In this document: positions 2,762 through 64,000 of the stretch, one piece after another
Layout of the letters: the number at the start of each line of letters is the position of its first letter
Numbering within the stretch: position 1 is the first letter of the stretch
Assembly (NCBI GenBank): GCA_950097015.1
Contig: CATNEN010000003.1
Location: 8,060,001-8,124,000, forward strand
DNA length: 64,000 nucleotides
Direction of reading: 5' to 3'
Origin: Macrostomum hystrix
Lineage: Eukaryota; Animalia; Platyhelminthes
Program-made: the position numbers and the translations under genes
Notes under the pieces: generated by a model
What the model was told of the DNA's origin: nothing
The model's database searches: none
What the model saw: the letters and a program-made list of their open reading frames with translations, nothing else

Positions 2762-5249
2762 TCCTGGTGTACAGAGCCAGCGGTGCAGTTGTGAGCATGA
2801 CAATCAGAGGCTGACCACCAAATAGAGAAAATGCGATTCCAGCAATGCTCTGAGAGAGGATCACGCGTTGTACAGCTGAAAGTTTGAATTTTCGCTTTAA
2901 TAAAGATTGTTTTATAGAATTTTTGATGCTAGTTATAATTAATACTATCTGGAATAATTTAGACAACCAATCTAAAAGAGCGATAACTCACTAATTTTGC
3001 CTCCAGTTTGGTTGTCATTCAGGACGCCAAACGCAATGCTGGGCATTAGGCAGGCAAAGTACAGAAACGTGATGGCGGACATTAATTTACGCAGGGTTGT
3101 GTTGCCTCGAAAGCCTATAGAAAAGTACGAAAAATAACGAAGACGAATTATAACTATAAGGGTACAGAATAGGGTAGAAATTTTATTAAACTGAACTAAC
3201 CATCCGTGTAGTCCGAAGGATAGTGGGGCAGTCTGCGTTTAAAATCTGCTCTGATTCCATTGCAGAGAGGCCACGTGCTGTCCTGTAATTGAGGTGCAGT
3301 GTGAGACGAAAACACGTCAGCTTGTTGCAGGAATCGAATGTCAAGAATACCTAACCGGTACGTCTAGATAAGCTAGGTTTATTATTTTTAATTGTAGAAA
3401 GATTTCAACAAGTATTTCAAATACCCGCATTTTTTCTGTATCTTCTAAAATATTAAATCCAGAATACGGGCTAAAATTTTCGCTCTATCCGATGAATCAA
3501 CGTCCAGTATCACAAAACATCGCATCGTCGAGATAAACGATTCTAGTCGGGGTGTATGGGGGCAAAAACCACAAGATTTTATCACGTTATCATGCCGGCT
3601 GCGATTAAGATTACGATTATGATTAAGATACCTGAGGCTTCTATAACTCACAATGGATCAGTGGTCAGGGTGGTAACGGGTCCGACCCTCGCACTAATGT
3701 CCCAGAACATTGTTTCAAAATAAATATTTTCCAACCATCTTTCTTTATCACTCACGTAGCTAAAGGCCTGCGACATGAAGTCCTTCGTACGCAGGCTCTT
3801 TCGCCTATAGATCTTCTGCTCCTCGCCAAGGTCCTGCGCGTGGCCCTGCAGCATCTCCTTGAACTCGGTCTCGTTTTCAGCTAGCAGAAGGCGCTGACGA
3901 AACTCGCTGTCGGCTAGTATTGTGGCGAAGGTTCTACCAAGTTCGATGTCACTTTTAGTGCCTTTCTGTACGAATGGTCAAACATGTCATGTTTGTATGC
4001 TTGTTTGTTTAACGAAAAATGCGTATCAGAAAATATTTTCCGACCTCCTTGGTCGGTGTGACCACCAGCAGTACGAAGTAGACACCTTCAGATGATCGGC
4101 CCAGGTTCACAGGACTGGCTAGTCTGGCAATGGCTACGTGACGCTTGTGGACTCCGTTCAGAGAACACCTGCGGTTTGAGTTGGTTTTAAAAGTATATTA
4201 TCCTATTTAAGTTATTCTCATCTGCAGAACAACGCATCGTATTAAAAAATCTATCGCGACTCACATTGTGCATAGCCAGCTATTGTCGGTGATCAAGCCT
4301 TCGTTATCAATCACCGATATACTCTTGATTGTCTTTGCCAAACGTTGATCTGCAATCAACCAATAGGGTACGAGTGCCTTTTGTTTTTTTAACTCAAAAT
4401 ATCCGTATTTGCAGGAGGTCTTTTATTCTGCTGATTATTTTCATCTATTCGAGTTTTGATAATTTAATCACTCAAAAGCCTATAATTTATACTCAATGCT
4501 GGACAAAGTGTTACACAGCAGGCGTACAGGTGTAGTCGAGCCAGGAGGCCTGCAAGAACAGTGTCTTCTTCGCCTCCTGGACCTTGGCGTCTAGCCAGTT
4601 GGTGCTCTCAGCCTCGTCTCGACTAGAATGAGCCTCTTGGTCTGCTCTAAAGATGGACTGGAGCATCTTCTCAACGATGCACTCGATGTTGGCGCCCTCA
4701 AGGTCTAGCAGCAGGGTGGCCTCCTTGAGGAAGCGCTCAATATCTAGGTTGGCGCGCACTTCACTGCTGAAGTCTTTCAGCGGGATTTTCTGAGACAAAG
4801 TTGACATGTTGAAAACTCTATGCCGTCTGTCAAATGGGTAAGGCTAGAAGCAATCATCAAAACAATTCAGTTTTTGAACTCACCTCCAATCTGGACACAA
4901 CAAGACATGGAAGCGATTCGTCTGAAAATTTAATTTAAAGAAAGCCTTGTATTTCCATGAAAGTCAGTAAGCCGTAAAACTGAAAATATAAACTTGTCTT
5001 TTCATTAAAAAAGCACGCATTTTCATTCAAGCCAAGCTGCACGTCAGCCACGTTACAATTAGCCAATCGTGAAGTCATTCGGTGAAGCCCCGGCTGCATC
5101 AAGCCATCCATGCCGATGACGGCGCCAACACCAACGCTGCCGCCATCGCCACCGCCGCCGCCGCAGCCGCCAAGAGTGCTAAGTCCATCGCCGTTCCATT
5201 CGATGGAACAGTCGTCACTGACGACGCTCTGTACTCGATGAAGTTCCAT
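2762..5249 (-). CDS. SLC4A11: SLC4A11/BOR1-like transporter (SLC4 family), N-terminal cytoplasmic domain and first TM segments; 3' part lies outside the window
   Basis: Phase-consistent GT-AG exons on the minus strand: 5249-4994 (start and donor tentative), 4921-4884, 4843-4528, 4349-4265, 4168-4045, 3965-3756, 3282-3201, 3114-2992, 2875-2762. The translation includes KDFSSEVRANLDIERFL, NSWLCTMCSLNGVHKRHVAIARL, KGTKSDIELGRTFATILADSEFRQRLL, GIRADFKRRLPHYPSDYTDG, FLYFACLMPSIAFGVLND and FGGQPLIVMLTTAPLALY. These match SLC4A11 motifs as I recall them. Confidence 0.88.
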
Positions 5250-6660: not shown

Positions 6661-9600
6661 GACTGAGAGACTGAGAGACTGCATGGGAGAGACTGGGAGA
6701 GAATGAGAGAGAATGAGAGACTAACAGAGACAGAGAGACTGAGAGAGACTGAGAGAGACTGTGAGAGACTGTGAGAGACTGAGAGGGACTGAGAGAGACT
6801 GAGAGAGACTGAGAGACTAACAGAGACAGAGAGACTGAGAGAGACTGAGAGAGACTGTGAGAGACTGTGAGAGACTGAGAGAGACTGAGAGAGACTGAGA
6901 GACTGAGAGAGACTGAGAGAGACTGTGAGAGACTGAGAGAGACTGAGAGAGACTGAGAGAGACTGAGAGAGACTGATAGAGACTTAGAGACTGAGAGAGA
7001 CTGAGAGAGACTGAGAGACACTGAGAGAGACTGAGAAAGACTGAGAGACTGAGAGAGACTGAGAGAGACTGAGAGAGACTGAGAGAGACTAACAGAGACA
7101 GAGAGACTGAGAGAGACTGAGAGAGACTGTGAGAGACTGAGAGAGACTGAGAGAGACTGAGAGACTAACAGAGACAGAGAGACTGAGAGAGACTGAGAGA
7201 GACTGTGAGAGACTGAGAGAGACTGAGAGAGACTGAGAGAGACTGAGAGAGACTGATAGAGACTTAGAGACTGAGAGAGACTGAGAGAGACTGAGAGACA
7301 CTGAGAGAGACTGAGAAAGACTGAGAGACTGAGAGAGACTGAGAGAGACTGAGAGACTGAGAGAGACTGAGAGAGACTAAGAGAGACTGTGAGAGACTGA
7401 GAGAGACTGAGAGAGACTGAGAGAGACTGAGAGAGACTGAGAGACTGAGAGAGACTGAGAGAGACTGAGAGAGACTGAGAGAGACTGAGAGAGACTGAGA
7501 GAGACTGAGAGAGACTGAGAGAGACTAAGAGAGACTGAGAGAGACTGAGAGAGACTGAGAGAGACTGAGAGAGACTGAGAGAGACTGAGAGAGACTGAGA
7601 GACACTGAGAGAGACTAAGAGAGACTGAGAGAGACTGAGAGAGACTGAGAGAGACTGAGAGAGACTGAGAGAGACTGAGAGAGACTGAGAGAGACTAAGA
7701 GAGACTGAGAGAGACTGAGAGACTGAGAGAGACTGAGAGAGACTGAGAGAGACTGAGAGAGACTGAGAGAGACTGAGAGAGACTGAGAGAGACTGAGAGA
7801 GACTGAGAGAGACTGAGAGACTGAGAGAGACTGAGAGAGACTAAGAGAGACTGTGAGAGACTGAGAGAGACTGAGAGAGACTGAGAGAGACTGAGAGAGA
7901 CTGAGAGAGACTGAGAGAGACTGAGAGAGACTGAGAGACTGAGAGAGACTGAGAGAGACTGAGAGAGACTGAGAGAGACTGAGAGAGACTGAGAGAGACT
8001 GAGAGAGACTGTGAGAGACTGAGAGAGACTAAGAGAGACTGAGAGAGACTGAGAGAGACTGAGAGACTGAGAGAGACTGAGAGAGACTAAGAGAGACTGT
8101 GAGAGACTGAGAGAGACTGAGAGAGACTGAGAGAGACTGAGAGAGACTGAGAGAGACTGAGAGAGACTGAGAGAGACTGAGAGACTGAGAGAGACTGAGA
8201 GAGACTGTGAGAGACTGAGAGAGACTGAGAGACTGAGAGAGACTGAGAGAGACTGAGAGAGACTGAGAGAGACTGAGAGAGACTGTGAGAGACTGAGAGA
8301 GACTGAGAGAGACTGAGAGAGACTGAGAGAGACTGAGAGAGACTGAGAGAGACTGAGAGAGACTGAGAGAGACTGAGAGAGACTGAGAGACTGAGAGAGA
8401 CTGAGAGAGACTAAGAGAGACTGTGAGAGACTGAGAGAGACTGAGAGAGACTGAGAGAGACTGAGAAAGACTGAGAGAGACTGAGAGACTGAGAGAGACT
8501 GAGAGAGACTAAGAGAGACTGTGAGAGACTGAGAGAGACTGAGAGAGACTGAGAGAGACTGAGAGAGACTGAGAGAGACTGAGAGAGACTGAGAGAGACT
8601 GAGAGAGACTGAGAGACTGAGAGAGACTGAGAGAGACTGAGAGAGACTGAGAGAGACTGAGAGAGACTGAGAGAGACTGAGAGAGACTGTGAGAGACTGA
8701 GAGAGACTGAGAGACACTGAGAGAGACTGAGAGAGACTGAGAGACTGAGAGAGACTGAGAGAGACTGAGAGAGACTGAGAGAGACTAACAGAGACAGAGA
8801 GACTGAGAGAGACTGAGAGAGACTGTGAGAGACTGAGAGAGACTGAGAGAGACTGAGAGACTAACAGAGACAGAGAGACTGAGAGAGACTGAGAGAGACT
8901 GTGAGAGACTGAGAGAGACTGAGAGAGACTGAGAGAGACTGAGAGAGACTGATAGAGACTTAGAGACTGAGAGAGACTGAGAGAGACTGAGAGACACTGA
9001 GAGAGACTGAGAAAGACTGAGAGACTGAGAGAGACTGAGAGAGACTGAGAGACTGAGAGAGACTGAGAGAGACTAAGAGAGACTGTGAGAGACTGAGAGA
9101 GACTGAGAGAGACTGAGAGAGACTGAGAGAGACTGAGAGACTGAGAGAGACTGAGAGAGACTGAGAGAGACTGAGAGAGACTGAGAGAGACTGAGAGAGA
9201 CTGAGAGAGACTGAGAGAGACTGAGAGAGACTGAGAGAGACTGAGAGAGACTGAGAGAGACTGAGAGAGACTGAGAGAGACTGAGAGAGACTGAGAGACA
9301 CTGAGAGAGACTAAGAGAGACTGAGAGAGACTGAGAGAGACTGAGAGAGACTAAGAGAGACTGTGAGAGACTGAGAGAGACTGAGAGAGACTGAGAGAGA
9401 CTGAGAGAGACTGAGAGACTGAGAGAGACTGAGAGAGACTGAGAGAGACTGAGAGAGACTGAGAGAGACTGAGAGAGACTGAGAGAGACTGAGAGAGACT
9501 GAGAGAGACTGAGAGACTGAGAGAGACTGAGAGAGACTAAGAGAGACTGTGAGAGACTGAGAGAGACTGAGAGAGACTGAGAGAGACTGAGAGAGACTGA

Positions 9601-9888
9601 GAGAGACTGAGAGAGACTGAGAGAGACTGAGAGAGACTGAGAGAGACTGTGAGAGACTGAGAGAGACTGAGAGAGACTGAGAGAGACTGAGAGAGACTGA
9701 GAGACTGAGAGAGACTGAGAGACTGAGAGAGACTGAGAGAGACTGAGAGAGACTGAGAGAGACTAAGAGAGACTGTGAGAGACTGAGAGAGACTGAGAGA
9801 CACTGAGAGAGACTGAGAGAGACTGAGAGACTGAGAGAGACTGAGAGAGACTAAGAGAGACTGTGAGAGACTGAGAGACTGAGAGGGA
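6661..9888. repeat. (GAGAGAGACT)n / (GAGAGACT)n satellite with higher-order duplications
   Basis: Directly visible. An identical block recurs at 7089-7301 and 8785-8997 (offset 1696). Confidence 0.97.
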
Positions 9889-32961: not shown

Positions 32962-35900
32962 TAACATCTACTATCTAACATCTAGGGGTTCTGTCTAATA
33001 TGTAGGGGTTCTGTCTAATATGTAGGGGTTCTGTCTAATATGTAGGGGTTCTGTCTAATATGTAGGGGTTCTGTCTAATATGTAGGGGTTCTGTATAATA
33101 TGTAGGGGTTCTGTCTAATATGTAGGGGTTCTGTCTAATATGTAGGGTTCTGTCTAACATCTAGGGGTTCTGTCTAATATGTAGGGGTTCTGTCTAATAT
33201 GTAGGGTTCTGTCTAATATGTAGGGGTTCTGTCTAATATGTAGGGGTTCTGTCTAATATGTAGGGGTTCTGTCTAATATGTAGGGGTTCTGTCTAATATG
33301 TAGGGTTCTGTCTAATATGTAGGGGTTCTGTCTAATATGTAGGGGTTCTGTCTAATATGTAGGGTTCTGTCTAATATGTAGGGGTTCTGTCTAATATGTA
33401 GGGGTTCTGTCTAATATGTAGGGGTTCTGTCTAATATGTAGGGGTTCTGTCTAATATGTAGGGGTTTCTGTCTAATATGTAGGGGTTCTGTCTAATATGT
33501 AGGGGTTCTGTCTAATATGTAGGGGTTCAGTCTAATATGTAGGGGTTCTGTCTAATATGTAGGGGTTCTGTCTAATATGTAGGGGTTCTGTCTAATATGT
33601 AGGGGTTCTGTCTAATATGTAGGGGTTCTGTCTAATATGTAGGGGTTCTGTCTAATATGTAGGGGTTCTGTCTAATATGTAGGGGTTCTGTCTAATATGT
33701 AGGGTTCTGTCTAACATCCAGGGGTTCTGTCTAATATGTAGGGGTTCTGTCTAATATGTAGGGTTCTGTCTAATATGTAGGGGTTCTGTCTAATATGTAG
33801 GGGTTCTGTCTAATATGTAGGGGTTCTGTCTAATATGTAGGGGTTCTGTCTAATATGTAGGGGTTCTGTCTAATATGTAGGGGTTCAGTCTAATATGTAG
33901 GGGTTCTGTCTAATATGTAGGGGTTCTGTCTAATATGTAGGGGTTCTGTCTAATATGTAGGGGTTCTGTCTAATATGTAGGGGTTCTGTCTAATATGTAG
34001 GGGTTCTGTCTAATATGTAGGGGTTCTGTCTAATATGTAGGGGTTCTGTCTAATATGTAGGGTTCTGTCTAACATCTAGGGGTTCTGTCTAATATGTAGG
34101 GGTTCTGTCTAATATGTAGGGGTTCTGTCTAATATGTAGGGGTTCTGTCTAATATGTAGGGGTTCTGTCTAATATGTAGGGGTTCTGTCTAATATGTAGG
34201 GGTTCTGTCTAATATGTAGGGGTTCTGTCTAATATGTAGGGGTTCTGTCTAACATCTAGGGGTTCTGTCTAATATGTAGGGGTTCTGTCTAATATGTAGG
34301 GTTCTGTCTAATATCTAGGGGTACTGTCTAACATCTAGGGGTTCTGTCTAACATCTAGGGGTTCTGTCTAACATCTAGGGGTTCTGTCTAACATCTAGGG
34401 GTCCGGTCTAACATCTAGGGGTTCTGTCTAATATCTAGGGGTTCTGTCTAACATCTAGGGGTTCTGTCTAATATGTAGGGTTCTGTCTAACATCTAGGGG
34501 TTCTGTCTAATATGTAGGGTTCTGTCTAATATGTAGGGGTTCTGTCTAACATCTAGGGGTTCTGTCTAATATGTAGGGTTCAGTCTAACATCTAGGGGTT
34601 CTGTCTAATATGTAGGGTTCTGTCTAATATGTAGGGGTTCAGTCTAATATGTAGGGGTTCTGTCTAATATGTAGGGTTCTGTCTAATATGTAGGGGTTCA
34701 GTCTAATATGTAGGGGTTCTGTCTAACATCTAGGGGTTCTGTCTAACATCTAGGGGTTCTGTCTAATATGTAGGGGTTCTGTCTAACATCTAGGTGTTCT
34801 GTCTAATATGTAGGGTTCTGTCTAACATCTAGGGGTTCTGTCTAATATGTAGGGTTCTGTCTAATATGTAGGGGTTCTGTCTAACATCTAGGGGTTCTGT
34901 CTAATATGTAGGGTTCAGTCTAACATCTAGGGGTTCTGTCTAATATGTAGGGTTCTGTCTAATATGTAGGGGTTCAGTCTAATATGTAGGGGTTCTGTCT
35001 AACATCTAGGGGTTCTGTCTAATATGTAGGGGTTCTGTCTAATATGTAGGGTTCTGTCTAATATCTAGGGGTACTGTCTAACATCTAGGGGTTCTGTCTA
35101 ACATCTAGGGGTTCTGTCTAACATCTAGGGGTTCTGTCTAACATCTAGGGGTCCGGTCTAACATCTAGGGGTTCTGTCTAATATCTAGGGGTTCTGTCTA
35201 ACATCTAGGGGTTCTGTCTAATATGTAGGGTTCTGTCTAACATCTAGGGGTTCTGTCTAATATGTAGGGTTCTGTCTAATATGTAGGGGTTCTGTCTAAC
35301 ATCTAGGGGTTCTGTCTAATATGTAGGGTTCAGTCTAACATCTAGGGGTTCTGTCTAATATGTAGGGTTCTGTCTAATATGTAGGGGTTCAGTCTAATAT
35401 GTAGGGGTTCTGTCTAATATGTAGGGTTCTGTCTAATATGTAGGGGTTCAGTCTAATATGTAGGGGTTCTGTCTAACATCTAGGGGTTCTGTCTAACATC
35501 TAGGGGTTCTGTCTAATATGTAGGGGTTCTGTCTAACATCTAGGTGTTCTGTCTAATATGTAGGGTTCTGTCTAACATCTAGGGGTTCTGTCTAATATGT
35601 AGGGTTCTGTCTAATATGTAGGGGTTCTGTCTAACATCTAGGGGTTCTGTCTAATATGTAGGGTTCAGTCTAACATCTAGGGGTTCTGTCTAATATGTAG
35701 GGTTCTGTCTAATATGTAGGGGTTCAGTCTAATATGTAGGGGTTCTGTCTAACATCTAGGGGTTCTGTCTAATATGTAGGGGTTCTGTCTAATATGTAGG
35801 GTTCTGTCTAATATCTAGGGGTACTGTCTAACATCTAGGGGTTCTGTCTAACATCTAGGGGTTCTGTCTAACATCTAGGGGTTCTGTCTAACATCTAGGG

Positions 35901-36770
35901 GTCCGGTCTAACATCTAGGGGTTCTGTCTAATATCTAGGGGTTCTGTCTAACATCTAGGGGTTCTGTCTAATATGTAGGGTTCTGTCTAACATCTAGGGG
36001 TTCTGTCTAATATGTAGGGTTCTGTCTAATATGTAGGGGTTCTGTCTAACATCTAGGGGTTCTGTCTAATATGTAGGGTTCAGTCTAACATCTAGGGGTT
36101 CTGTCTAATATGTAGGGTTCTGTCTAATATGTAGGGGTTCAGTCTAATATGTAGGGGTTCTGTCTAATATGTAGGGTTCTGTCTAATATGTAGGGGTTCA
36201 GTCTAATATGTAGGGGTTCTGTCTAACATCTAGGGGTTCTGTCTAACATCTAGGGGTTCTGTCTAATATGTAGGGGTTCTGTCTAACATCTAGGGGTTCT
36301 GTCTAATATGTAGGGTTCTGTCTAACATCTAGGGGTTCTGTCTAATATGTAGGGTTCTGTCTAATATGTAGGGGTTCTGTCTAACATCTAGGGGTTCTGT
36401 CTAATATGTAGGGTTCAGTCTAACATCTAGGGGTTCTGTCTAATATGTAGGGTTCTGTCTAATATGTAGGGGTTCAGTCTAATATGTAGGGGTTCTGTCT
36501 AACATCTAGGGGTTCTGTCTAATATGTAGGGTTCTGTCTAACATCTAGGGGTTCTATCTAATATGTAGGGTTCTGTCTAACATCTAGGGGTTCTGTCTAA
36601 CATCTAGGGGTTCTGTCTAATATCTAGGGGTTCTGTCTAATCTCTAGGGGTACTGTCTAACATCTCAGGATTCTGTCTAACATCTCAGGATTCTGTCTAA
36701 CATCTCAGGATTCTGTCTAACATCTCAGGATTCTGTCTAACATCTCAGGATTCTGTCTAACATCTCGGAG
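32962..36770. repeat. 19/20-bp satellite (CTGTCTAATATGTAGGGGTT)n with 750-bp higher-order repeat
   Basis: Directly visible. The diagnostic variant GTCCGG recurs at 34401, 35151 and 35901. Confidence 0.97.
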
Positions 36771-52870: not shown

Positions 52871-53708
52871 TCTAGTATAGTCTGTATAGATCTAAATATT
52901 TTCGACGAGATCAACAGATCATAGAGTATAGTTTCATGTTGGTAAAGACAGACGTTCACGCCATGTTACCATGTTATTTTCAATCTCTTAACTATTATAA
53001 CAAGTACAGAAAGGCACCTATTAAAAAATAAAAAAATCCTTCAATAATTTTTTTTATTTAAGGAAAAAGCATTAACGCACCATTTAACGGCAAAGAAAAT
53101 CACAGTACCAGATGTTATGCGTGTATACCTTCGATGCATGATTAGCGTCATCGAGTCTAAGGTACGAGCGTAAGTGGACCGCTTATTGATCGATGAAAGA
53201 ACGATTATTGTTGTGGTTAAAACATTGTCTTTTAAAAATGAATTGGCAGTTAGTTAAAGAAGTTCCTAAATTTATTCGATGCTTAAATAACAAAAACAGA
53301 CGTGCCTATCTGTTTCTAGTCTTTAGATTTCAAAATTTGCATGCAAGCCAGAAACATCGCCTTGCAAACTTTTTGTGTCCTTTAATTTAAACAATTAAGT
53401 TAGTTAAAATTCAACCCGGGCCACCGTTCGGCAAAATATGTTTGCCTTAGAAAACCAACCTCTATTCACCTGCTGAAGAATTATTGAATAATTGACACAT
53501 GACTATAAACAAGGAAAGAAAAAGGTTTAATCCTCGCAAAGTTTCCATTTTCCCACACGCCATACAATCTTACCAACTGAATAGATGGAAAATAATGAAC
53601 CCAAAGACAGCTAGAAGAGAACTGAACCAGCTGCGCTCTGGTGCACTTTATTGAGACGCTAGAACAAGCCAGATGGAGTAGAGTTGACAGTTGACGACGA
53701 AACGCATC

Positions 53709-53715
53709 TATAAAA
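53709..53715 (+). promoter_or_regulatory. Candidate TATA box of lectin copy 1
   Basis: TATAAAA about 75 nt upstream of the ATG at 53786. Confidence 0.45.
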
Positions 53716-53785
53716 TGTCAAAACTTGAAAAATTCACGAATCGCGACAAAAATTCTATCCCACCACCAATCCTTCACTCGCCACA

Positions 53786-54541
53786 ATGGCTGAGCTAAGA
53801 TTTATCGCAAACGCAACGCTGCTTCTGTTTATGGTTCGGTACTTCCTATGCTGTCAAGCCGATCGGAGCTTTACAGTTCAAAACAGCTACCTGTGCATCC
53901 GACCTGAGTTTGTTAGAAACCAATCTGCGACATCTCTCCGACACTGCTCCATGATGTGCTCCGAGATGGAAAACTGCCAGGCCTTCACCATGGCGGACGG
54001 TCCGTGTCAGCTGTTCGTGTTCAACAAGTGCAGCAAGTCGGTGAGGGACTGCAGCTGCTCCAGGAGAGGCCAGGTGTTTGTGAAGCAGCAGCCGGGACTC
54101 GAGGCTGGCCAGCTGTGTCCGACTGGCTACGGAGACGACCTGTGCGGAGTGAAGTACAAGCTGTACTTTGGCACGGGAACCTGGTGGCCGAGCAGGCAGA
54201 AGTGCGAGTCGGAGAGCGGTCTGGTGATCATGGCCGATGTGATGGACACCACAGAGATGATTCGCGTGGAGCAGATCTACAACAACCAGGCTGGAGGCAC
54301 ATCCATCTGGCTCGGCGGTCTTCAAGCTCCTGGCAGTCCGGAGCCAGCTGGAGGTTGGTACTGGGTCGGCTGCAACATCACCCTGGACGTCATTGTTTGG
54401 GGCAGTGGCGAGCCCAACAACGGCATGAGCCGAGAAAACACAATCGCGCGCTGGTACTATCACAATAAGCTCTCGGACTTGTGGGAGTCATCAACCACAC
54501 CTGGCGCTGTCCTGTGCGAGTGCGTGTCACCGTTTGACTGA
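53786..54541 (+). CDS. Secreted PAN/apple-like + C-type lectin domain protein, copy 1 (EPN motif), intronless
   Basis: Signal peptide; Cys pattern LC...CSMMCSEMENCQAF..GPCQL (PAN-like); CPTGYGDDLC linker; CTLD motifs W..SRQKC, IWLGG, WYW, WGSGEPNN, EN, LSD, VLCEC. Confidence 0.88.
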   Translation: MAELRFIANATLLLFMVRYFLCCQADRSFTVQNSYLCIRPEFVRNQSATSLRHCSMMCSEMENCQAFTMADGPCQLFVFNKCSKSVRDCSCSRRGQVFVKQQPGLEAGQLCPTGYGDDLCGVKYKLYFGTGTWWPSRQKCESESGLVIMADVMDTTEMIRVEQIYNNQAGGTSIWLGGLQAPGSPEPAGGWYWVGCNITLDVIVWGSGEPNNGMSRENTIARWYYHNKLSDLWESSTTPGAVLCECVSPFD

Positions 54542-55293
54542 GCGCTCTCAATGGAACTATGTATTATTCCTTTATCCATTGCTTTGTTCCTTTTTTAACA
54601 AGGAGTCAGTTTTCGTGCATTCTTCTAAAAATGCGCAACCTGTTTGCAACGCTTTGCTTTGAATTGAAAGATAGAATTGCATCTGATTTAGGTCACTAAT
54701 TTCTGAGCTGCTAATCGCATAATCAATTTGCTAAACTGTTCGATTGCAAATTACGTAATCTTTTTTAATTATCATCATATTACGTAAGTAAACTTCTTGC
54801 ATGCGTCGTAGCTTGTAGAACGAAAATTATTCACCTGGCCCCAGCCAATCACAGAGCACCACGTGCACTTAATTTTGGCGGCATGCATCAGAGCGAATAA
54901 GTTTTTTAGCGGTCGGCGAAGCACAAGTAAAGTAAAATCTTGGACAGAAAGTAGAAATTAGCATTAATAAAATAATAAACGAATCGCTTCAGGATTTAGC
55001 TCTGGTTCTTCTGGTAGCGAGTTTCCAGTATTGTTCGCTATTCCGCGTTATTTTTTTCACAGAGTTTAGAGTTTAAACAGAGGAAAATGAAAGTTACAAA
55101 GAGATATCGAAAATTATTTCTGAGTCCGATTTACTGATAGAAAAAATAGAGGCATGAATATCACAACACTTAGAGTGTCATGTTTGAACCATTGCTTCGA
55201 AATCATCTGCTAATAGTGTTTGCATAAGCTGGTAATGCAGCGTCAAGAGCTGAATCACCGAATCCTTGCACTGACGCCACTGATCACATTCGC

Positions 55294-56052
55294 TCAGTCG
55301 AAGGGAGACAGGCACTCACACAGGACAGCGCCAGGTGTGTCAGAGACTTCCCGAAAGTCCGTGAGTTTTTCGGTATAGAACACGCGCCCGATTGTATTTT
55401 CTGTATTGTAGTTATTGTTCGGCTCGCCACTGGCCCACAGACTGCCATCCACGGTGATGTTGCAGCCGACCCAGTACCAGCCACCTGCTGGCTCCGGACT
55501 ACCTGCTGGCTGGAAGCCTCCGAGCCAGATCGATTTGCCTCCAGCCTTGTTGTCGTAGATCTGGTCTACGCGGCTCATCTCTGTGGTGTCCATCACATCG
55601 GCCATGATCACCAGACCGCTCTCCGACTCGCACTTCTGCCTGCTCGGCCACCAGTAACCTACGCCGAAGTACAGCTTGTACTTCACTCCGCACAGGTCGT
55701 CTCCGTAGCCAGTCGGACACAGCTGGCCAGCCTCGAGTCCCGGCTGCTGCTTCACAAACACCTGGCCTCTCCTGGAGCAGCTGCAGTCCCTCACCGACTT
55801 GCTGCACTTGTCGAACACGAACAGCTGACATGGACCGTCAGCCATGGTGAAGGCCTGGCAGCTTGTCATCAGAAAGCACAGCACAGAACAGCGCACGAGT
55901 GACATGGCGACTGCTTGAGTCCTGACAAACTCAGGTCGGATGCACAGGTAGCCGATTTGGGCATCGAAAGTCACCCCGGCATAGCAGGGTACCAAGGATC
56001 GATGCACCAGCAACACCACCAGCAGGAAGCTTTTGTGCTCTGAGAATAGCAT
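55294..56052 (-). CDS. Secreted PAN/apple-like + C-type lectin protein, copy 2 (EPN motif), intronless
   Basis: The first in-frame ATG at 56052 gives the signal peptide MLFSEHKSFLLVVLLVHRS. Paralogous to copy 1; ends CECLSPFD*. Confidence 0.87.
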   Translation of the reverse strand: MLFSEHKSFLLVVLLVHRSLVPCYAGVTFDAQIGYLCIRPEFVRTQAVAMSLVRCSVLCFLMTSCQAFTMADGPCQLFVFDKCSKSVRDCSCSRRGQVFVKQQPGLEAGQLCPTGYGDDLCGVKYKLYFGVGYWWPSRQKCESESGLVIMADVMDTTEMSRVDQIYDNKAGGKSIWLGGFQPAGSPEPAGGWYWVGCNITVDGSLWASGEPNNNYNTENTIGRVFYTEKLTDFREVSDTPGAVLCECLSPFD

Positions 56053-56479
56053 GGCCCATCGAAAAACAGATTGCGGACTCTTTTTTACAGGTTGAGCTAA
56101 TCGTCTCAAAATATTTGAGCTTTTCTGCAGCTTTTATGCACCAAGGTACCGGTTTTGACTAAGTGACTCAATTGTCTAAGCTGTCAATCAGTCGCATCTT
56201 TGGAGTAGAATATGCTTGATTTTTTAAATATCTCATTGTCTTGAGCCAGGAAGCGTTGAAGGCATATTTTTAGTTCAGAGCAATCGAATAATGGAAGAGA
56301 TATAAATATCCTTTCAACGAATTCGAAATACAATTCCGAGTCGCAACTTGCAAAAATCAATCTAATTGAAGCTCATTGTTCTTTGAAAAAGCACAATGCA
56401 TGCAAAAATAGTACTCGTTTTTGCAGCTGTCTTGTGTGGTTTATTGATTCGATTCGATTTCTATAATGAATGGTGTCAC

Positions 56480-56692
56480 CTTGGATTGGGGTGGGGCACC
56501 AGTTTGGATTGGGGTGGGGCATCAGTTGGGATTGGGGTGGGACATCAGTTGGGATTGGGGTGGGGCATCACATTGGATTGGGGTGGGCATCACATTGGAT
56601 TGGGGTGGGGCATCACATTGGATTGGGGTGGGGCATCAGTTTGGCTTGGGGTGGTGCATCAGTTTGGCTTGGGGTGGGGCATCAGTTTGGCT
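56480..56692. repeat. 23-bp G-rich minisatellite (TTGGATTGGGGTGGGGCATCAGT)n, G-quadruplex-capable
   Basis: About 9 units, each with GGGGTGGGG. Confidence 0.92.
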
Positions 56693-57886
56693 AGGGCCGC
56701 ACTGAGGTGCAGTGCTAATTTGTGTATAGGGGTGAATGAAATACACTAGCGCTTATGGGAAAATCTGACCTTCGGCCAGAAAAATTTGAATATCTCGATG
56801 GTCTGAAGAGCTGACAACTTGATTATTGTTTCAGAAGATGCGCAACAAAAATTGTTGCTCAGAAGTTGCTCAGTTTCGTGTGCTTGCCTTGCTCCGTTCG
56901 GGTGCAGCACGAAAAATTGTAATGGGGAAATCCCCCTTGGTAGGTCTATTGTTAATCTAGTAGCGAACTCTATCATATAAATTTAAGGAACTTTGATATT
57001 CTTAAATTATCCTTTAAGGATATTTATCATGACAACTGATAAACTGTCAGGAAGACTCCTTGTATGGGTTTATTGTCTTTTATCGTTTGATGTACTTTAT
57101 TAATAATCATTAGGTATAATTCCAATCCAGTCAATTCCTATTAAAATTTCTCTCAGTTTGGAATTATGTAATATTCCATATTTTATTTAGCTTTTAATTA
57201 TAGTGAATAAAGTCATGCCGTATGTTATCCGTATTTAGAAGTTACTAGCAAGGTATAGCACTGGAAATAAAATTAATAAGCGTTGGAAGAAACGAGGGAT
57301 GAGGAAGTTTTGGCAGAATGACGTTAAATAATTTAGCAGATAGCAACACTGGACTAATAAAATTGATAGGACCTAATAGGAAAATGTGTAACAATAAGCT
57401 GCACAAGCAGAATGAAAAATATTTTCTACGTTTTCAAGCCCATGCAACGTCAACGTTATCAAGATCAACGCCATCTAGTCAGCCTCACCTCCGCCTACAT
57501 AGAATATCGATTAGGGCTGCAGCCAATCAGTTTTTAGCTCCAACAAATGGCTATATAATTTCTCAACGCTCAGTTCACCACTAGCGTATGGCGTATCTGC
57601 TCTTAGTGCATAATAGGATCCCGGTACCCCGCTTCGCAATGTTCGCCTGCTCAGACCAGTTGCCCAGTTGCTAAATATTCCAATTTCTCGCTGTCCGTTT
57701 AATCCCTTTTAGATAAAAAAACTCACCAAGGCTCCTAAAAAGCCTCCTCAATAGAATTTATCCACAAAGCATTGTAATTTCAAAAGTTTACATCCTTTTT
57801 TAAGCAGCAAAAAGCTAGCTGATTGGAAGAGACATCCATTATCACAGAAGACATTACATTCATATATTATCTTTCAGTGGTTTGAA

Positions 57887-57930
57887 ATGCGGCAATTAGG
57901 GATCACTAGAACAATGTTTGAGCCGCTACC

Positions 57931-57961
<31 letters not shown>

Positions 57962-58678
57962 CTGTATAGACGCCTGTTATCATCCGCTGCAAACCTGAAT
58001 TTCAAAAATCAACTGGGCTACCTGTGCATCCGACCTGAGTTTGTTAGAAACCAATCTGCGACATCTCTCCGACACTGCTCCATGATGTGCTCCGAGATGG
58101 AAAACTGCCAGGCCTTCACCATGGCTGACGGTCCGTGTCAGCTGTTCGTGTTCAACAAGTGTAGCAAGTCGGTGAGGGACTGCAGCTGCTCCAGGAGAGG
58201 CCAGGTGTTTGTGAAGCAGCAGCCGGGACTCGAGGCTGGCCAGCTGTGTCCGACTGGCTACGGAGACGACCTGTGCGGAGTGAAGTACAAGCTGTACTTC
58301 GGCATAGGAACCTGGTGGCCGAGCAGGCAGAAGTGCGAGTCGGAGAGCGGTCTGGTGATCATGGCCGATGTGATGGACACCACAGAGATGATTCGCGTGG
58401 AGCAGATCTACAACAACCAGGCTGGAGGCACATCCATCTGGCTCGGCGGTCTTCAAGCTCCGGGCAGTCCGGAGCCAGCAGGAGGCTGGTACTGGGTCGG
58501 CTGCAACATCACCCTGGACGGCAGTCTGTGGGGCACAGGGGATCCCAACGGGTACAACGGAGACGACAATGAAAACGTCACCGGTCGCTGGAATGCGCAC
58601 AGCAACCTTTCCGACTTTCGAGAATTCTCGTCCACCCCGGGAGCTGTTCTGTGCGAATGCGTCAATCCATTTGACTGA
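57887..58678 (+). CDS. Secreted PAN/apple-like + C-type lectin protein, copy 3 (DPN motif), intronless
   Basis: Poly-Leu signal peptide encoded by a (CTG)n run; alternative ATG at 57914. Core nearly identical to copy 1; ends CECVNPFD*. Confidence 0.87.
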
Positions 58679-59604
58679 TCGATCAATTCAGCGAATTCAC
58701 ACTGAAATTCATCGTCATGAATATCGTGCGCGATTCATGCACTTCTAAAATAGATGTATTAGTGGTTTAATTCAGGATAATTCAGACTGGCAATCTCTCG
58801 GGTCTCATTATTTTGGAATGTTTACTGTTTACTTCGAACTATTTTTCTAACGTTTGTTCGTCTTTAAATTTTTTTTTCTTTGCACGAAGCAATTTCATCG
58901 CCGTAATTTTTGCGAGATTTCTTGGTCCCTGTGACTGTTCGCGTCTTTACTTATTAATATATCAGCTGTAGGCAGTTACTGAATTGGTCTCAAAGGGGAC
59001 TTCGAAACCAGAGTTAAGTAATTGACACAATTACTTTGTCGCAAGTTTTCATTTTAATTTGGCTTGGACTGTTGACTATTTTTTACATTTGCAAAACAAT
59101 TCTGAACGCGTCATGCTATTCTGAATTTCGTCTGTTATCATCCGTGCAAGAATTATGAAGCTTCAGTACTAAAATCTACTCAAGATCATTTTTTAGCCTA
59201 GACCCCTAGATAATGACATACAGAAACTATTTTTATCTTCTTTTTAAAGCACGCATGCAGTTGCTACAATGTATGATTATCGAGAGGTCACGCTTCACAC
59301 ACAATATTTTCAGATTTTGATAGTTTATGATTTTGCTTTCAATTAGGTAACCGACAACTAAAGTGGGAACTTAAAAGCTTTCAACTTCTGCTTCACTGAC
59401 TTCTAGACGAGGTGAAATCGAAGATGGAATAACACACGAAGAGTAACTATGAGATGCCGTTACATCTTAATTTGAAAGCGTATTACGAGCTAGATGGACT
59501 GGCATCTTAAATGCGAAAACTGAATTATAGAACAGTCTGGATAAAGGCTTAAAATCTAAGTGCAAGTGCTTATTGTCGAATACATGCAAGTCTTGTTATT
59601 ACTA

Positions 59605-60598
59605 CGAGGGGTGTCCCAAAAGTTCCCGGAATGTCCGAGGTAGCTCTTCAACGGAGCCATGAAATTTTATGCCCATGGTGTCAAATGAAAGGAAATTTTG
59701 TTACAAAGAAAACAAAGTTAAAATCATGTTCATATCTTTTTCTATTCTGGGGCTGCAGCAAGAAACGTGCGCGAAGGTCAGGGGTAGTGTTACACAAGCT
59801 CAAAAATCTATGGAAATGATTTTAAACAATAAAACACAGAACAGTTCATGAATCCTCGTTGATGAATCCTCGGGGTATGCACCAATTCAAAATTTAAAGC
59901 GAATCGTTAAGCTCAACCTGCGGCTTCTCCACGTAGTCGCCATTCAGCTGGACACACCTCTGCCACCTTGAAAGCATGCCGTCGATTGCCTGGGCAAAAA
60001 CAGTTCGAGGCATTTCATGCAGGATGACGCGACGAGTGAAGTCTTCAATTTCACTGCGGTTCTTGAACACCCGGCCACGAAGAAGTTTCTTCATTTGTGG
60101 AAAGATGGCAAAATCGGCAGGGGCCAAGTCTGGCGAGTAGGGCGGATGAGGCACCAACTCAAAATTCAGCCGGTCGATCTGCGCCGTCGTCTTTCCAGCA
60201 GTGTGTGGCCGAGCATTGTCATGGTGCAAAAAGCGCTTGGTACAAATTATCTGCACTCGCGTAAAAGCTCAGATAAGCTTTATGAGCATTTCTGTTTTTT
60301 TCCATAGACACTGCCACGTCTTTCTGACACCTCAGTAGCACTAATTCAAAATGAAAATATCCAAAAATGGAGATGAAAAATCATTGCCATAAAGTTTTGA
60401 GCTTGTGTAACACTACCCCTGACCTTCGCGCACGTTTCTTGCTGCAGCTCCTGAATAGAAAAATATATGAACATTATTTTAACTTTGTTTTCTTTGTGAC
60501 AAAATTTCCTTTCATTTGACACCATGGGCATGAAATTTCATGGCTCCGTTGAAGAGCTGCTACCTTGGACATTCCGGGAAATTTTGGGACACCCCTCG
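59605..60598 (-). mobile_element. Internally deleted mariner (DD34D) element with ~220-bp TIRs and TA TSD
   Basis: TA|CGAGGGGTGTCCCAAAA...TTTTGGGACACCCCTCG|TA. Long inverted repeats at ~59605-59822 and ~60377-60598. Internal minus-strand transposase fragment. Confidence 0.93.
59894..60256 (-). pseudogene. Mariner transposase C-terminal fragment (D34D)
   Basis: HHDNARPHT-(34 aa)-YSPDLAPADF and RWQRCVQLNGDYVEK. The DNA-binding N-terminus and first catalytic Asp are deleted. Confidence 0.92.
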
Positions 60599-61981
60599 TA
60601 TTATTCTTTAACTCAGATGCAATACAAATTTAGATCTTGACGATCTAATTGTGATAGCTTACTCTCTTCGCTATCCTTCTTAGCCTGGGGGTCAGTGGCG
60701 GAACGTTAAACACATCAAGGTCGCTGATGCAATAGATTGGATACTCGTAGATTGCAGAAGAAGATAATAGCTCGTATTAATATTAATTGCAACAGTTAGA
60801 CTGACAGCAATAGCCAACTCTCTTAAAATTTAAATGGAGGCAGCATCGCGCATTGCTCATCCTTTCATCCGAAAAAAGGCTTCATCATCACACGTCATAC
60901 TGAAGGCAACAAAAGAAATCCTCGATTAAATATGTCCTTGCAAGGTCCGTTGCGTTGCAGTGAAGGAATTCGTTTTCAAAAAGACGCTATAGCTAGATTA
61001 TTGTCTAAAATTAGTGTCAGCTTTTAGATTTTTAGAATAGCTTCAACTGTTGAAGCTGAGCTTCCCTTCCCCAATCTGTCAATCATCTGCTGCAACTCTA
61101 GTGATGCATGGCTTCTAGACAAATATAATGCAGCAGAGGACTTCAACATCCTAAAACCATAGCTCACAATGTTGAGATGCAGCCACCCACACCAAATGCG
61201 TTCTAGCGTAATCTATCCAATGCACCACTTCCTATGTGCTGATTTCCTAAACGCAGGCTACCAATGGCAGCATAACAACAAGCTATATATATAACATACG
61301 AAAGTGCGAAGCAGTCAACCGTTTTCCCACTACCTTAGCTTCTTCCAACTCCTAGCCTCGCTAGCAAATCAATCTAAAGTTATAATAGTCAACCAGACTA
61401 CGGACTCAATCACATAGACAACAGGCCTTAGCCTTGAACCGCTGAATATTCGACGAATCTGATAAGTACCACGTTCCTGACTGCTTCTTACTTAGTATTC
61501 TGATTGCTCACCATCATTGTGAATTATTTGAACAACACCAGTAATACGATTGGAAATATAACACCTGAGAGAAGGTTTAACACCGCTGGAAACTTGAGTT
61601 GAACTTGCCGATCATTGACTCAACATAGGATATACGTATTTAGAACAGAGAGTTAATTAGAGAGCATCATAGAGAAGATAACAATAAAGTATATCAATGG
61701 GATTTGCAACTGACATTGGATTCTTTATTCCTATGAGTACGACGTTGGTCTGTATGTTGAGCTCAAAATAAACTCATTCTCACTCAATTCTCGTGTGATG
61801 TTTTCGTCGTAAAAATGGAGCCTTGGAAACTGATCAATCATTTGCCGTGTAGTCAAATATTCAAAACGAAAGCAGGAAATATAATTAGACACAAGCCAGC
61901 TACTCAACGCCTACGAAAAGGACGATATCCAAACGTTTAACAACATCCATCATCTTCACAACATCCAAATCGCCCAAACAT

Positions 61982-62730
61982 ATGTAACTAGTGGTTAAGC
62001 TCAAAAGTATCCTGCTGGCACTGTTGCTGGTGCATCGACCCTGCGATGCCAGCATAACTTTCGATGCTCAAGATGGATTCCTGTGCATCCGACCTGAGTT
62101 TGTTAGAAACCAATCTGCGACACCTCTCCGACACTGCTCCATGATGTGCTCCGAGATGGAAAGCTGCCAGGCCTTCACCATGGCTGACGGTCCGTGTCAG
62201 CTGTTCGTGTTCGACAAGTGCAGCAAGTCGGTGAGGGACTGCAGCTGCTCCAGGAGAGGCCAGCTGTTTGTGAAGCAGCAGCCGGGACTCGAGGCTGGCC
62301 AGCTGTGTCCGACTGGCTACGGAGACGACCTGTGCGGAGTGAAGTACAAGCTGTACTTCGGCATGGGAACCTGGTGGCCGAGCAGGCAGAAGTGCGAGTC
62401 GGAGAGCGGTCTGGTGATCATGGCCGATGTGATGGACACCACAGAGATGATTCGCGTGGACCAGATCTACTACAACAGGGCTGGAGGCAAAACCTTCTGG
62501 CTCGGAGGCTTCCAGCCAGCAGGTAGTCCGGAGCCAGCAGGTGGCTGGTACTGGGTCGGCTGCAACATCACCGTGGATGGGAGTTTGTGGGGCTACGGAG
62601 ATCCAGACAATCGCTACAACGCCGAAAACGTGATTGGTCGTTGGTTCAATCACGATAAGCTCTCAGACTTCGAGATTATTGGGATACTCCTGGCGCTGTT
62701 TTGTGCGAGTGCATCAGTCCTTTTAACTAA
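61982..62730 (+). pseudogene. PAN/apple-like + C-type lectin copy 4 (DPD motif), disabled
   Basis: The in-frame ATG (61982) is followed directly by TAA (61985). A 1-nt deletion at ~62669-62670 (GACTTCGA vs GACTTTCG in paralogues) shifts the frame; restoring it gives DFRDYWDTPGAVLCECISPFN* (stop 62728-62730). Confidence 0.78.
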
Positions 62731-64000
62731 AAAATTCCATCGGGAATAAATTTACTCCAAGTACTCTACAACTTGTACATATCTTTACTATTTATTACAT
62801 CAACGTCGACGTAAAAATTTTGTCTGCATACTAGTTATGCTTAAATATATTATTTGCTTTGTTTAGCAATTAATACTTAATATTATGATATCAGCTTTAT
62901 ACATATTGGCAGGACTTTTGTGACGCCTTTCGAAAGTGATAGTGTCAGCGATTCGATCAGATTTGTTGCCCTTAATTCTCCGAAATAAATTGAGGATATG
63001 TAGATCATTTACAGACTATGACCATAAAAATTTAAGCTGTAATTTTTGGGCAATCTAGGTATTATAATCCCAGCTAATTGTAGTGTATGGCTCATAAAAC
63101 GCTCTGCTGACAGAGGCACAAAATGGGGCGTTTCACAAGCACGAAATTTCACATCGTCGAACGAAACAATATTTCATAAAGCTCGAAATTTCATAACGAC
63201 CAATATTACTGCGGAGATAGGATACTTCACAACGTCTAACTCTGTTTGCACTATTGAGAAGGCGTTTGCTATGTCCCCAGCGTAATTTGACGATTTGAAG
63301 TCTCGATCCTATCTGTATAGTGTCAATGGCAAAATGGCAAACAGAAAATGCATTGTATGCAAATTAGTACGTGTACAAATGATGCCGGCAAATATATATC
63401 TATTTTTGCTAGTTTCATCATTTTATGTCTAATTAAACATTAAATTATAAAATAAAAAACAATTAAAAAGTATAATTTTTTAGCATTGAACTCGTTTTTC
63501 TCGTCTCGTCTCGTGTTTAAACAATTTCTCGTAGCGAACGTAAATAGGTAAGAACTGTTTTAAGTGGAGTCAGTACTAAGACGAGAATTCTTTTAAAAGG
63601 AATAAATCTATTTTGCTAGACAAATTATATTTGCTTGAGTAGCCACGATAAGTTTAGAAACCATTACACGCCAATATCGTGTCATTTTTTAGATGTTATT
63701 TTTTTGACCTATATGCGATAGTTCATTCGATCATGACAATAAGGAAAATTGTGCCAGTCTTACTAAAGAGGCCTAATTTATTTTATTTAAAAGCACGAAC
63801 CATTTTTGCGGTTGATTAAGTAGGCCTAAATATATTCAAAAGGTCTTGAGACCATAGACCAATTATTGTGCTACTTGAAGGCTTAAATAGCTTCAAAGCC
63901 ATTTAATTTGACTACTTACTAGGCCTACTTAGTCAAAGCAGGAAGTTGGCCTAAGTAGTTGTGTTCTTTTTATTGAATAAACATATTTTGTTCCTAATTA

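Follow-up and report, generated by a model that had tools for sequence, protein, structure and literature searches.

A lectin-like gene cluster on contig C3 of Macrostomum hystrix

The stretch of DNA analyzed here (the window, 64,000 nt in all) lies on contig C3 of the flatworm Macrostomum hystrix (C3:8,060,001-8,124,000) and carries, towards its 3' end, four paralogous genes, c1 to c4, for predicted secreted proteins that combine a PAN/apple module with a C-type-lectin-fold domain (CTLD). The central part of these genes is nearly identical from copy to copy and their ends are strongly diverged. It is this distribution of differences, within the window and across a large gene family of the same genome, that is described and interpreted below. 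An earlier note on this DNA had recognized four intronless PAN/C-type lectin paralogues, and four single open reading frames (ORFs) are indeed present, with a CTLD fold indicated by both profile and structure comparisons.

Gene c1 (53786-54541, + strand) is an intact single ORF of 251 aa with a hydrophobic N-terminus and the predicted layout of a secreted PAN/apple and CTLD protein. Gene c2 (55294-56052, - strand) is inverted with respect to its neighbors and encodes 252 aa in an intact ORF that begins with ATG; the frame can be extended to a TTG at 56109, and the hydrophobic leader results from the ATG start. Gene c3 (57887-58678, + strand), an intact single ORF of 263 aa, is a chimera of parts typical of two copies located elsewhere in the genome, L003 and L004. 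A perfect (GCT)9 at 57931-57957 corresponds to a poly-Leu run in the signal peptide of c3, and the leaders of L002 and L003 have slightly different Leu/Pro counts, pointing to a length-variable microsatellite within the signal peptide.

The fourth gene, c4 (feature 61982-62749, ORF 61991-62749, + strand), is a near-twin of L007 at C3:6.396 Mb. At 61982-61987 it reads ATG TAA where L007 reads Met-Gln, and a deletion of 1 nt in a T run at 62669-62670 removes the C-terminal Cys-Glu-Cys, the homologous stop being located at 62728-62730. With these two disabling changes in the assembled sequence, c4 is a probable pseudogene. Its central part is as homogeneous as in the intact copies despite both lesions, and this applies to the 189-nt block described below as well as to the adjoining mid part. 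The gene may be a very young pseudogene or one that is still being converted, or the lesions may be assembly errors of the PacBio continuous long reads (CLR).

Expression evidence is modest overall and is clearest for c2, which is transcribed and polyadenylated. A short-read contig (run X2) spans 54687-55436, and a loose end of 20 T precedes 54687 on the + strand. The 3' untranslated region of c2 is therefore placed at 54687-55293 (- strand, approximately 600 nt), with the poly(A) site at its end, where the short-read contig ends. Low-depth short-read contigs are also present on c1 and c3.

Protein architecture and fold

Each protein of the family consists of a signal peptide, a PAN/apple module and a C-type-lectin-fold domain. 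Pfam Lectin_C gave no match at E <= 0.1 for the four window proteins and none at E <= 0.01 for 60 members of the family, while matches to PAN_1 and PAN_4 stayed under the gathering score in both sets. A profile of the family, however, matched solved C-type lectins over its C-terminal 140 residues, among them codakine (E 3.7e-5), the mosquito lectin GCTL, the mannose receptor and selectins. An AlphaFold (AF2) model was obtained with a predicted local distance difference test (pLDDT) score of 92. When its CTLD was compared with solved structures by VIA-align, codakine gave a Z of 17.9 and a root mean square deviation (rmsd) of 2.2 Å over 127 residues; 65 chains had Z >= 8, and all 50 entries among the matches listed are CTLD or CTLD-like. 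Foldseek gave codakine a TMt of 0.84, with most of the top CTLD matches between 0.72 and 0.84. Profile and structure model together indicate that the domain adopts the CTLD fold.

For the N-terminal module, the PAN module of Eimeria MIC5 was matched at E 2.7e-4 by the family profile and at 4.5e-5 by a profile of the N domain only, and the latter also matched the apple domains of Toxoplasma MIC4 (4.4e-3). Profile similarity of this kind places the module among the predicted PAN/apple domains. A model of the domain on its own (pLDDT 80) had no Foldseek match at E <= 0.001; the matches are weak, and the top rows are nearly all PAN/apple proteins, namely SRK, the HGF N domain, plasminogen, factor XI and leech antiplatelet protein, the last with a template modeling (TM) score of 0.57-0.60 and an rmsd of 2.9.

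Canonical calcium site 2 was scored on five positions, the E and N of EPN (or QPD), a Glu at +8 and the N and D of WND. Four of the five are kept, as [E/D/Q]-P-[N/D/S/G], the Glu at +8 (within 'EN') and an invariant Asp, and the Asn of WND is replaced by Ser, Thr, Ala or Val across the family. The framework of cysteines departs from the canonical one. A helix-1 Cys and a C-terminal Cys are present and the C2-C3 disulfide is absent (EN-T/V; no Cys follows the Asp); there are instead an invariant Cys in 'GCN' and a terminal Cys-Glu-Cys, with pairings predicted from the sequence. Calcium-dependent sugar binding by the C-terminal tip of the domain is a plausible prediction from these residues. Codakine, a mannose-binding lectin of a bivalve (PDB 2vuv/2vuz), is the best match by both structure and profile and has EPN with a Glu eight residues later. 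It differs at approximately 21% identity from the flatworm domain, which lacks the second disulfide and the WND Asn and carries an N-terminal PAN module.

Family size and distribution

The M. hystrix assembly searched comprises 220,453,370 bp in 42 contigs. As the karyotype of the species is only 2n = 6, contigs are not chromosomes, and hence no chromosome-level claim is made. The assembly was built with canu from PacBio CLR reads of pooled inbred worms, polished with Arrow and Pilon, and purged of haplotigs (PMC10468722).

A six-frame search of the genome with c3 as the query gave at least 146 family matches, mostly without internal stops, many of them in tandem clusters on contigs C3, C7, C9, C1, C25, C34, C38 and C39. 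The copies are mostly intronless, complete-looking genes with 5' regions of their own, and a hydrophobic leader was found in all 75 extracted full-length copies with a plausible start codon. Partial copies exist as well (for example C3:8239642-8240001, matching aa 137-258 of the query), and approximately 10 copies have internal stops, so that the family undergoes birth-and-death turnover besides conversion. The earlier note, which missed this family as well as the disabling changes in c4, had proposed that all genomic paralogues be collected; of the at least 146 copies found, 80 full-length ones were used in the codon analyses.

All named relatives in public protein collections come from Macrostomum lignano, where they are annotated merely as 'C-type lectin domain-containing' or 'Apple domain-containing' (e.g. 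UniRef A0A1I8H3Z5, A0A1I8GTV8, PAA63283.1). These proteins are also of approximately 250 aa with the same succession of signal peptide, PAN/apple module and CTLD, are 48-51% identical to those of M. hystrix, and are best conserved in the 189-nt block and in the helix-1 region of the CTLD. The version of the block found on contig C3 occurs in none of the M. lignano proteins retrieved, whose blocks differ among themselves; the protein library was clustered at 50% and is biased to diverse members. No paper found by literature search mentions the family or its accessions, and the word 'lectin' is absent from the M. hystrix genome paper (PMC10468722). The family is large, secreted and lectin-like, and its named relatives are restricted to Macrostomum.

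A homogenized core between diverged ends

Genes c1 and c3 are alike over one internal stretch, 53886-54389 in c1 and 58017-58520 in c3 (both + strand), with sequence that cannot be aligned on both sides. Over this stretch 8 of 504 nt differ, which is exactly the number that the earlier note had counted by hand; six of the differences are silent third positions and the other two fall in one Thr/Ile codon. The strong divergence that had been reported immediately outside the stretch is also borne out, with 16-27 mismatches per 30-nt bin directly beyond it and silent sites diverged to saturation. Nei-Gojobori estimates of synonymous divergence (dS) among all four genes stay at 0.02-0.05 in the central block; they run from 0.6 up to saturation in the tip and from 0.5 up to saturation in the signal-peptide part.

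The most homogeneous part is a block of 189 nt, located at 53975-54163 in c1 (+), 55672-55860 in c2 (-), 58106-58294 in c3 (+) and 62165-62353 in c4 (+), which covers the C-terminal two-thirds of the PAN-coding part and continues through the linker and the first CTLD strand. When the c3 block was used as the query in a genome-wide DNA search, there were 143 candidate places, of which 40 were scored, all of them with an identity of at least 96%, and the near-identical copies are mostly spread along 8 Mb of contig C3. In the 26 full-length copies of this contig (C3:3.9-11.8 Mb), diversity per codon falls from approximately 0.6 to 0.03 at codon 27, the Cys of 'CQAF', and is back at approximately 0.5 at codon 90, sixty-three codons on. 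The median proportion of silent differences (pS), for which 0.75 is saturation, is 0.77 in the first half of the PAN domain, 0.074 in the block, 0.52 in the mid part and 0.75 in the tip. Silent divergence along the gene is accordingly strongly non-uniform (0.074 in the block versus 0.75-0.77 at the ends), and the uniform dS that would have spoken against homogenization is not what is seen. The constant frame with a variable tip that had been proposed from the four genes has to be redrawn, since variability in the 5' half of the PAN domain matches that of the tip, giving a variable-constant-variable layout.

A second, short island of near-zero diversity is found among the C3 copies in helix 1 of the CTLD ('KCESESGLVIMAD', codons 103-113 after CIRPEF, in the region of 54103-54141), set apart from the main block by approximately 13 variable codons.

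Between C3 and the other contigs the pS of the block is 0.48, and each genomic group has a separate version of it. Distances in the block and mid part grow with genomic distance (rho 0.48 and 0.40, p < 0.001), and no trend is seen at the saturated ends. In short-read contigs from a public run, compared over 53700-59699, depth is approximately 3000-3800 on the block versus 70-110 on unique parts, which means that the identity of many copies is present in the reads and not just in the polished assembly. The GC content at third codon positions (GC3) is 0.81 in the block versus 0.56-0.59 at the ends, in a genome of approximately 40% GC, and would be compatible with a contribution of GC-biased conversion.

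Other properties of the block were considered and rejected. As RNA it folds no better than shuffled sequences (z = +0.5), and no Rfam family was found in 53000-63500. Overlapping or antisense coding was discarded because the open alternative-frame spans do not exceed the 95th percentile of synonymous-shuffle controls and some copies have them interrupted.

Reassortment of the end cassettes

The last part of each gene, here called the tip cassette, occupies 54395-54538 in c1 (+), 55297-55440 in c2 (-), 58526-58675 in c3 (+) and 62585-62730 in c4 (+, out of frame after 62669). In c1 it comprises the last 48 codons, with the EPN...EN...D positions of the putative binding face of the CTLD; the four tip motifs quoted in the earlier note had been read correctly. 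Tips were compared with signal-peptide/5' parts among the 11 closest copies, which come from three clusters on C3 (at 6.40, 8.11 and 8.23 Mb), from C3 at 8.69 Mb (one copy) and from C38 (one copy). Copies c3, L002 and L003 share one 5' type, c2, L005 and L008 another, c4 and L007 a third, and c1 and L009 a fourth. The tips are grouped differently: c3 shares its DPNGYNGDDNEN type with L004 and L005 (5-7 nt differences), c4 shares its type with L007 (6 nt differences), L002, L003, L008 and L009 have a type in common, and the tips of c1 and c2 are each unique within the set. The two ends therefore assort independently among these copies.

Formal tests agree with this picture. The pairwise homoplasy index (PHI) of the 11 copies is highly significant (z = -30, p < 1/2000), and PHI is significant in five further groupings, namely all 26 C3 copies and the C7a, C9, C25 and C7b clusters. 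A run-length test of the GENECONV type, which the earlier note had suggested, placed 20 of 55 pairs beyond all 2000 permutations, and 22 of 55 pass the corrected threshold. In approximately unbiased (AU) tests, clades from the tree of the 5' part are rejected for the tip and vice versa, with p values of 4e-7 to 1e-93. A plain history of tandem duplication is ruled out by this segment-wise incongruence.

Individual pairs reveal where the segments join. Gene c3 and L003 match at 97-98% over a stretch that starts 1.07 kb upstream and reaches the end of the mid part, beyond which the two are unrelated. The match of c3 to L004 is 92-100% over the whole coding sequence of the mature protein, starting at its first codon and including the tip, and it is 86-92% in the 3' flank, with alignable stretches to approximately +1.5 kb. 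L005 (C3:8.234 Mb) is like c2 in its 5' flank, leader, N part and block, then continues from the block to the stop codon with a segment of the c3/L004 type, and its far 3' flank resembles the c1-c2 intergenic region (79%, BLAST). In c1 and c3 only the internal patch of approximately 500 nt is alike (-10 to +490), between flanks that cannot be aligned. Both this patch and L005 represent non-reciprocal patches bounded on each side by sequence of other origin. The pair c4/L007 is a simple duplicate of 1.15 kb.

The head-to-head intergenic region of c2 and c3 (56053-57886) is 96-97% identical to that of L005 and L003 (C3:8.234-8.237 Mb). The c2/c3 pair is a segmental duplicate of the L005/L003 pair, and yet both members carry different tips. 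As c2 is inverted and has the common core all the same, exchanges with it would have to be conversions.

Selection on the tip

Replacement divergence (dN) among the tips of c1 to c4 is 0.26-0.36 versus a dS of 0.6 to saturated, so that dN/dS is below 1. Young pairs of tips give dN/dS values from 0.1 to above 1 on 3-15 changes, too few to decide; in one of them, c4/L007, there are no silent and six replacement changes, and c4 is the probable pseudogene. Positive or accelerated selection on the tip was not found by pairwise dN/dS. The positions of the calcium site are kept while the columns adjoining them are the most variable.

These results bear on the second half of what the earlier note had proposed. 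Its statement that old duplicates had been homogenized in the middle by ectopic conversion with sharp borders holds up well against the non-uniform dS, PHI, the run lengths, the AU tests and the patch between unalignable flanks. The accompanying idea that the binding pocket escapes exchange does not, because whole tips, sometimes with 3' flank, have moved between loci (L005, c3), and the idea that the pocket diversifies finds no backing in the dN and dS values above. The tip is better described as a set of old cassette types moved between loci than as a protected or hyper-evolving pocket.

Interpretation and alternative explanations

Ectopic gene conversion within the family is well supported. 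In the explanation that we consider quite probable, the copies are old, their middle has been homogenized by ectopic, homology-dependent recombination, and their end types have been reassorted between loci. The mechanism that we infer is conversion limited by homology. Repeated ectopic recombination between copies, mostly as non-crossover gene conversion and in some exchanges carrying flank as well, would keep the middle of the gene alike. Tracts would start and end solely where two copies still match, and borders would be sharp because tracts stop at the edges of the common core; homology-dependent recombination would suffice for this, and selection for diversity would not be needed. The effect would be strongest in the 189-nt block, which is also the most protein-constrained part, and the diverged ends would persist as old, discrete cassette types moved from locus to locus. 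It is established theory, reportedly set out by Walsh in 1987 and by Teshima and Innan in 2004, that diverged segments escape conversion and similar ones are homogenized.

Several points weigh against this explanation. The clades for the AU tests were picked after the distance tables had been seen, and the count of minimum recombination events (Rm) is too high owing to multiple hits at the saturated ends. The block is the most conserved part of the protein across species and genomic groups, and its silent identity between groups is somewhat raised, which means that selection and codon bias contribute to its conservation. Homogenization specific to the species is assessed at the protein level only. 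Pilon polishing can erase small differences between repeats, so the true identity of the block may be slightly lower. Protein-level selection acts on the block too, yet it cannot explain silent-site identity within one group.

An adaptive version of these events would have selection keep the 189-nt block as a recombination anchor, such that the first half of the PAN domain and the binding face of the CTLD are recombined into a repertoire for immune, mucus or reproductive recognition. The variable-constant-variable layout with independent 5' and tip types would suit this, as would calcium-site residues kept amid the most variable columns and a family of mostly intact copies of which c2 is transcribed and polyadenylated. 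However, homology-limited conversion yields the same pattern neutrally, dN/dS in the tip is below 1 with the few changes of the young pairs spread from 0.1 to above 1, and one canonical calcium ligand, the WND Asn, is replaced. We regard this version as doubtful. Nucleotide-level selection on the block in old, independent copies, through RNA structure, an overlapping frame, a small-RNA target or extreme codon bias, would dispense with conversion altogether. The GC3 of 0.81, the silent identity that is raised even between genomic groups and the long alternative-frame ORFs that overlap the block in c1, c3 and c4 could all be read in this way. Yet a pS of 0.074 within C3 against 0.48 to other contigs, with largely the same amino acids, is not what such selection predicts, and it leaves the mosaic of 5' and tip types and the evidence from the flanks unexplained; it is very unlikely.

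It is still less likely, and in our judgment highly improbable, that the block reflects the true, young age of the copies after a recent burst of duplication, with ends that are hypermutated, strongly positively selected or both. A lineage-specific expansion is evident, and many copies hardly differ in the block and in part of the mid region, but silent sites at the ends are saturated (pS 0.75-0.77), so that mutation would have to become tens of times faster over a distance of 100 bp, and the intergenic flanks of most pairs cannot be aligned. Moreover, the segmental duplicates, with flanks 96-97% identical, have tips that differ at 37%, each matching the tip of another locus, and this amounts to replacement and not to mutation. 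Identity created by collapse or short-read polishing during assembly would be conceivable for CLR reads of pooled worms that were treated with Arrow and Pilon and purged of haplotigs (PMC10468722). It is scarcely credible here, since at least 40 copies have distinct flanks and ends and a few private differences in the block, independent short-read contigs have approximately 35-50x the unique depth on the block and agree with the unique tips and flanks to within 0-3 differences, and sequence diverged by 50% cannot become identical through polishing. Old copies with a homogenized middle and reassorted ends remain the explanation that accounts for the segment-wise patterns.

Surroundings of the cluster

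In the 47 kb 5' of the cluster (window positions 1-47000), more than 20 different minisatellite arrays form a patchwork, with units of 8-59 bp, lengths of 0.3-3.8 kb and extreme GC and AT skews, for example at 6665-9878 (10-bp unit) and 32974-36760 (20-bp unit). The lectin cluster is thus set in a repeat-rich and possibly recombination-prone region. Within the c2/c3 intergenic region, a 23-bp minisatellite of 9 copies (56481-56690) yields a spurious ORF of 117 aa at 56396-56749; the same repeat is found in the L005/L003 intergenic region and upstream of L002. Between c3 and c4, an ORF of 120 aa (59894-60256, - strand) has a match (E 8.8e-5, under the Pfam cut-off) to the C terminus of a transposase of the DDE_3 (Tc1/mariner) type and is a transposon remnant.

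Significance and comparison with known systems

The family offers a clean natural case in which homology-limited conversion would split a gene into a homogenized core and persistent, exchangeable end cassettes, with codon-sharp borders and with the pattern found in dozens of copies over megabases. It also draws attention to secreted lectin-like proteins that form a large and unstudied family specific to Macrostomum, a model genus for sexual conflict, regeneration and adhesion. In Macrostomum genomes, read mapping, orthology calls and dN/dS scans will all be misled by this family unless recombination is considered. If the exchange of cassettes were adaptive, the family would become a candidate repertoire for recognition in an invertebrate, in which germ-line exchange among more than 100 genes would generate a combinatorial set of secreted lectins for recognition of pathogens, mucus, or sperm and partner.

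Gene conversion in clusters is documented for the C-type-lectin-like genes of vertebrate natural killer (NK) cell receptors, KLRC/NKG2 and Ly49 (PMC3210942). As in the flatworm, clustered CTLD paralogues are homogenized by conversion in one part and distinct in the rest. The parts are reversed, however: in the vertebrate receptors the ligand-binding domain is homogenized and the signaling parts are distinct, whereas in M. hystrix the scaffold is homogenized and the putative binding face is distinct. The vertebrate receptors sit in the membrane as type II proteins and their genes have introns, unlike the small, secreted flatworm proteins with their single-exon genes in at least 146 copies. In Plasmodium var genes and in primate MHC and KIR genes, conserved blocks are sites of recombination between diverged cassettes, which results in chimeric paralogues and segment-wise incongruent trees. 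The M. hystrix genes resemble these as a mosaic family with a conserved block of homology, and differ in that the exchange seen is between germ-line paralogues, with no sign of antigenic variation, mutually exclusive expression or balancing selection. Programmed or somatic diversification, as in var/VSG switching or the assembly of lamprey VLR, would involve silent donor cassettes that feed an expression site, or somatic changes of sequence; the flatworm copies look like complete genes, each with a 5' region of its own. If the adaptive version applied, flatworms would have in these genes an equivalent of the var-like or KIR-like mosaic families. The process itself is known and its mechanism ordinary; what M. 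hystrix adds to these systems is a new and unusually clear example in an unstudied flatworm family.

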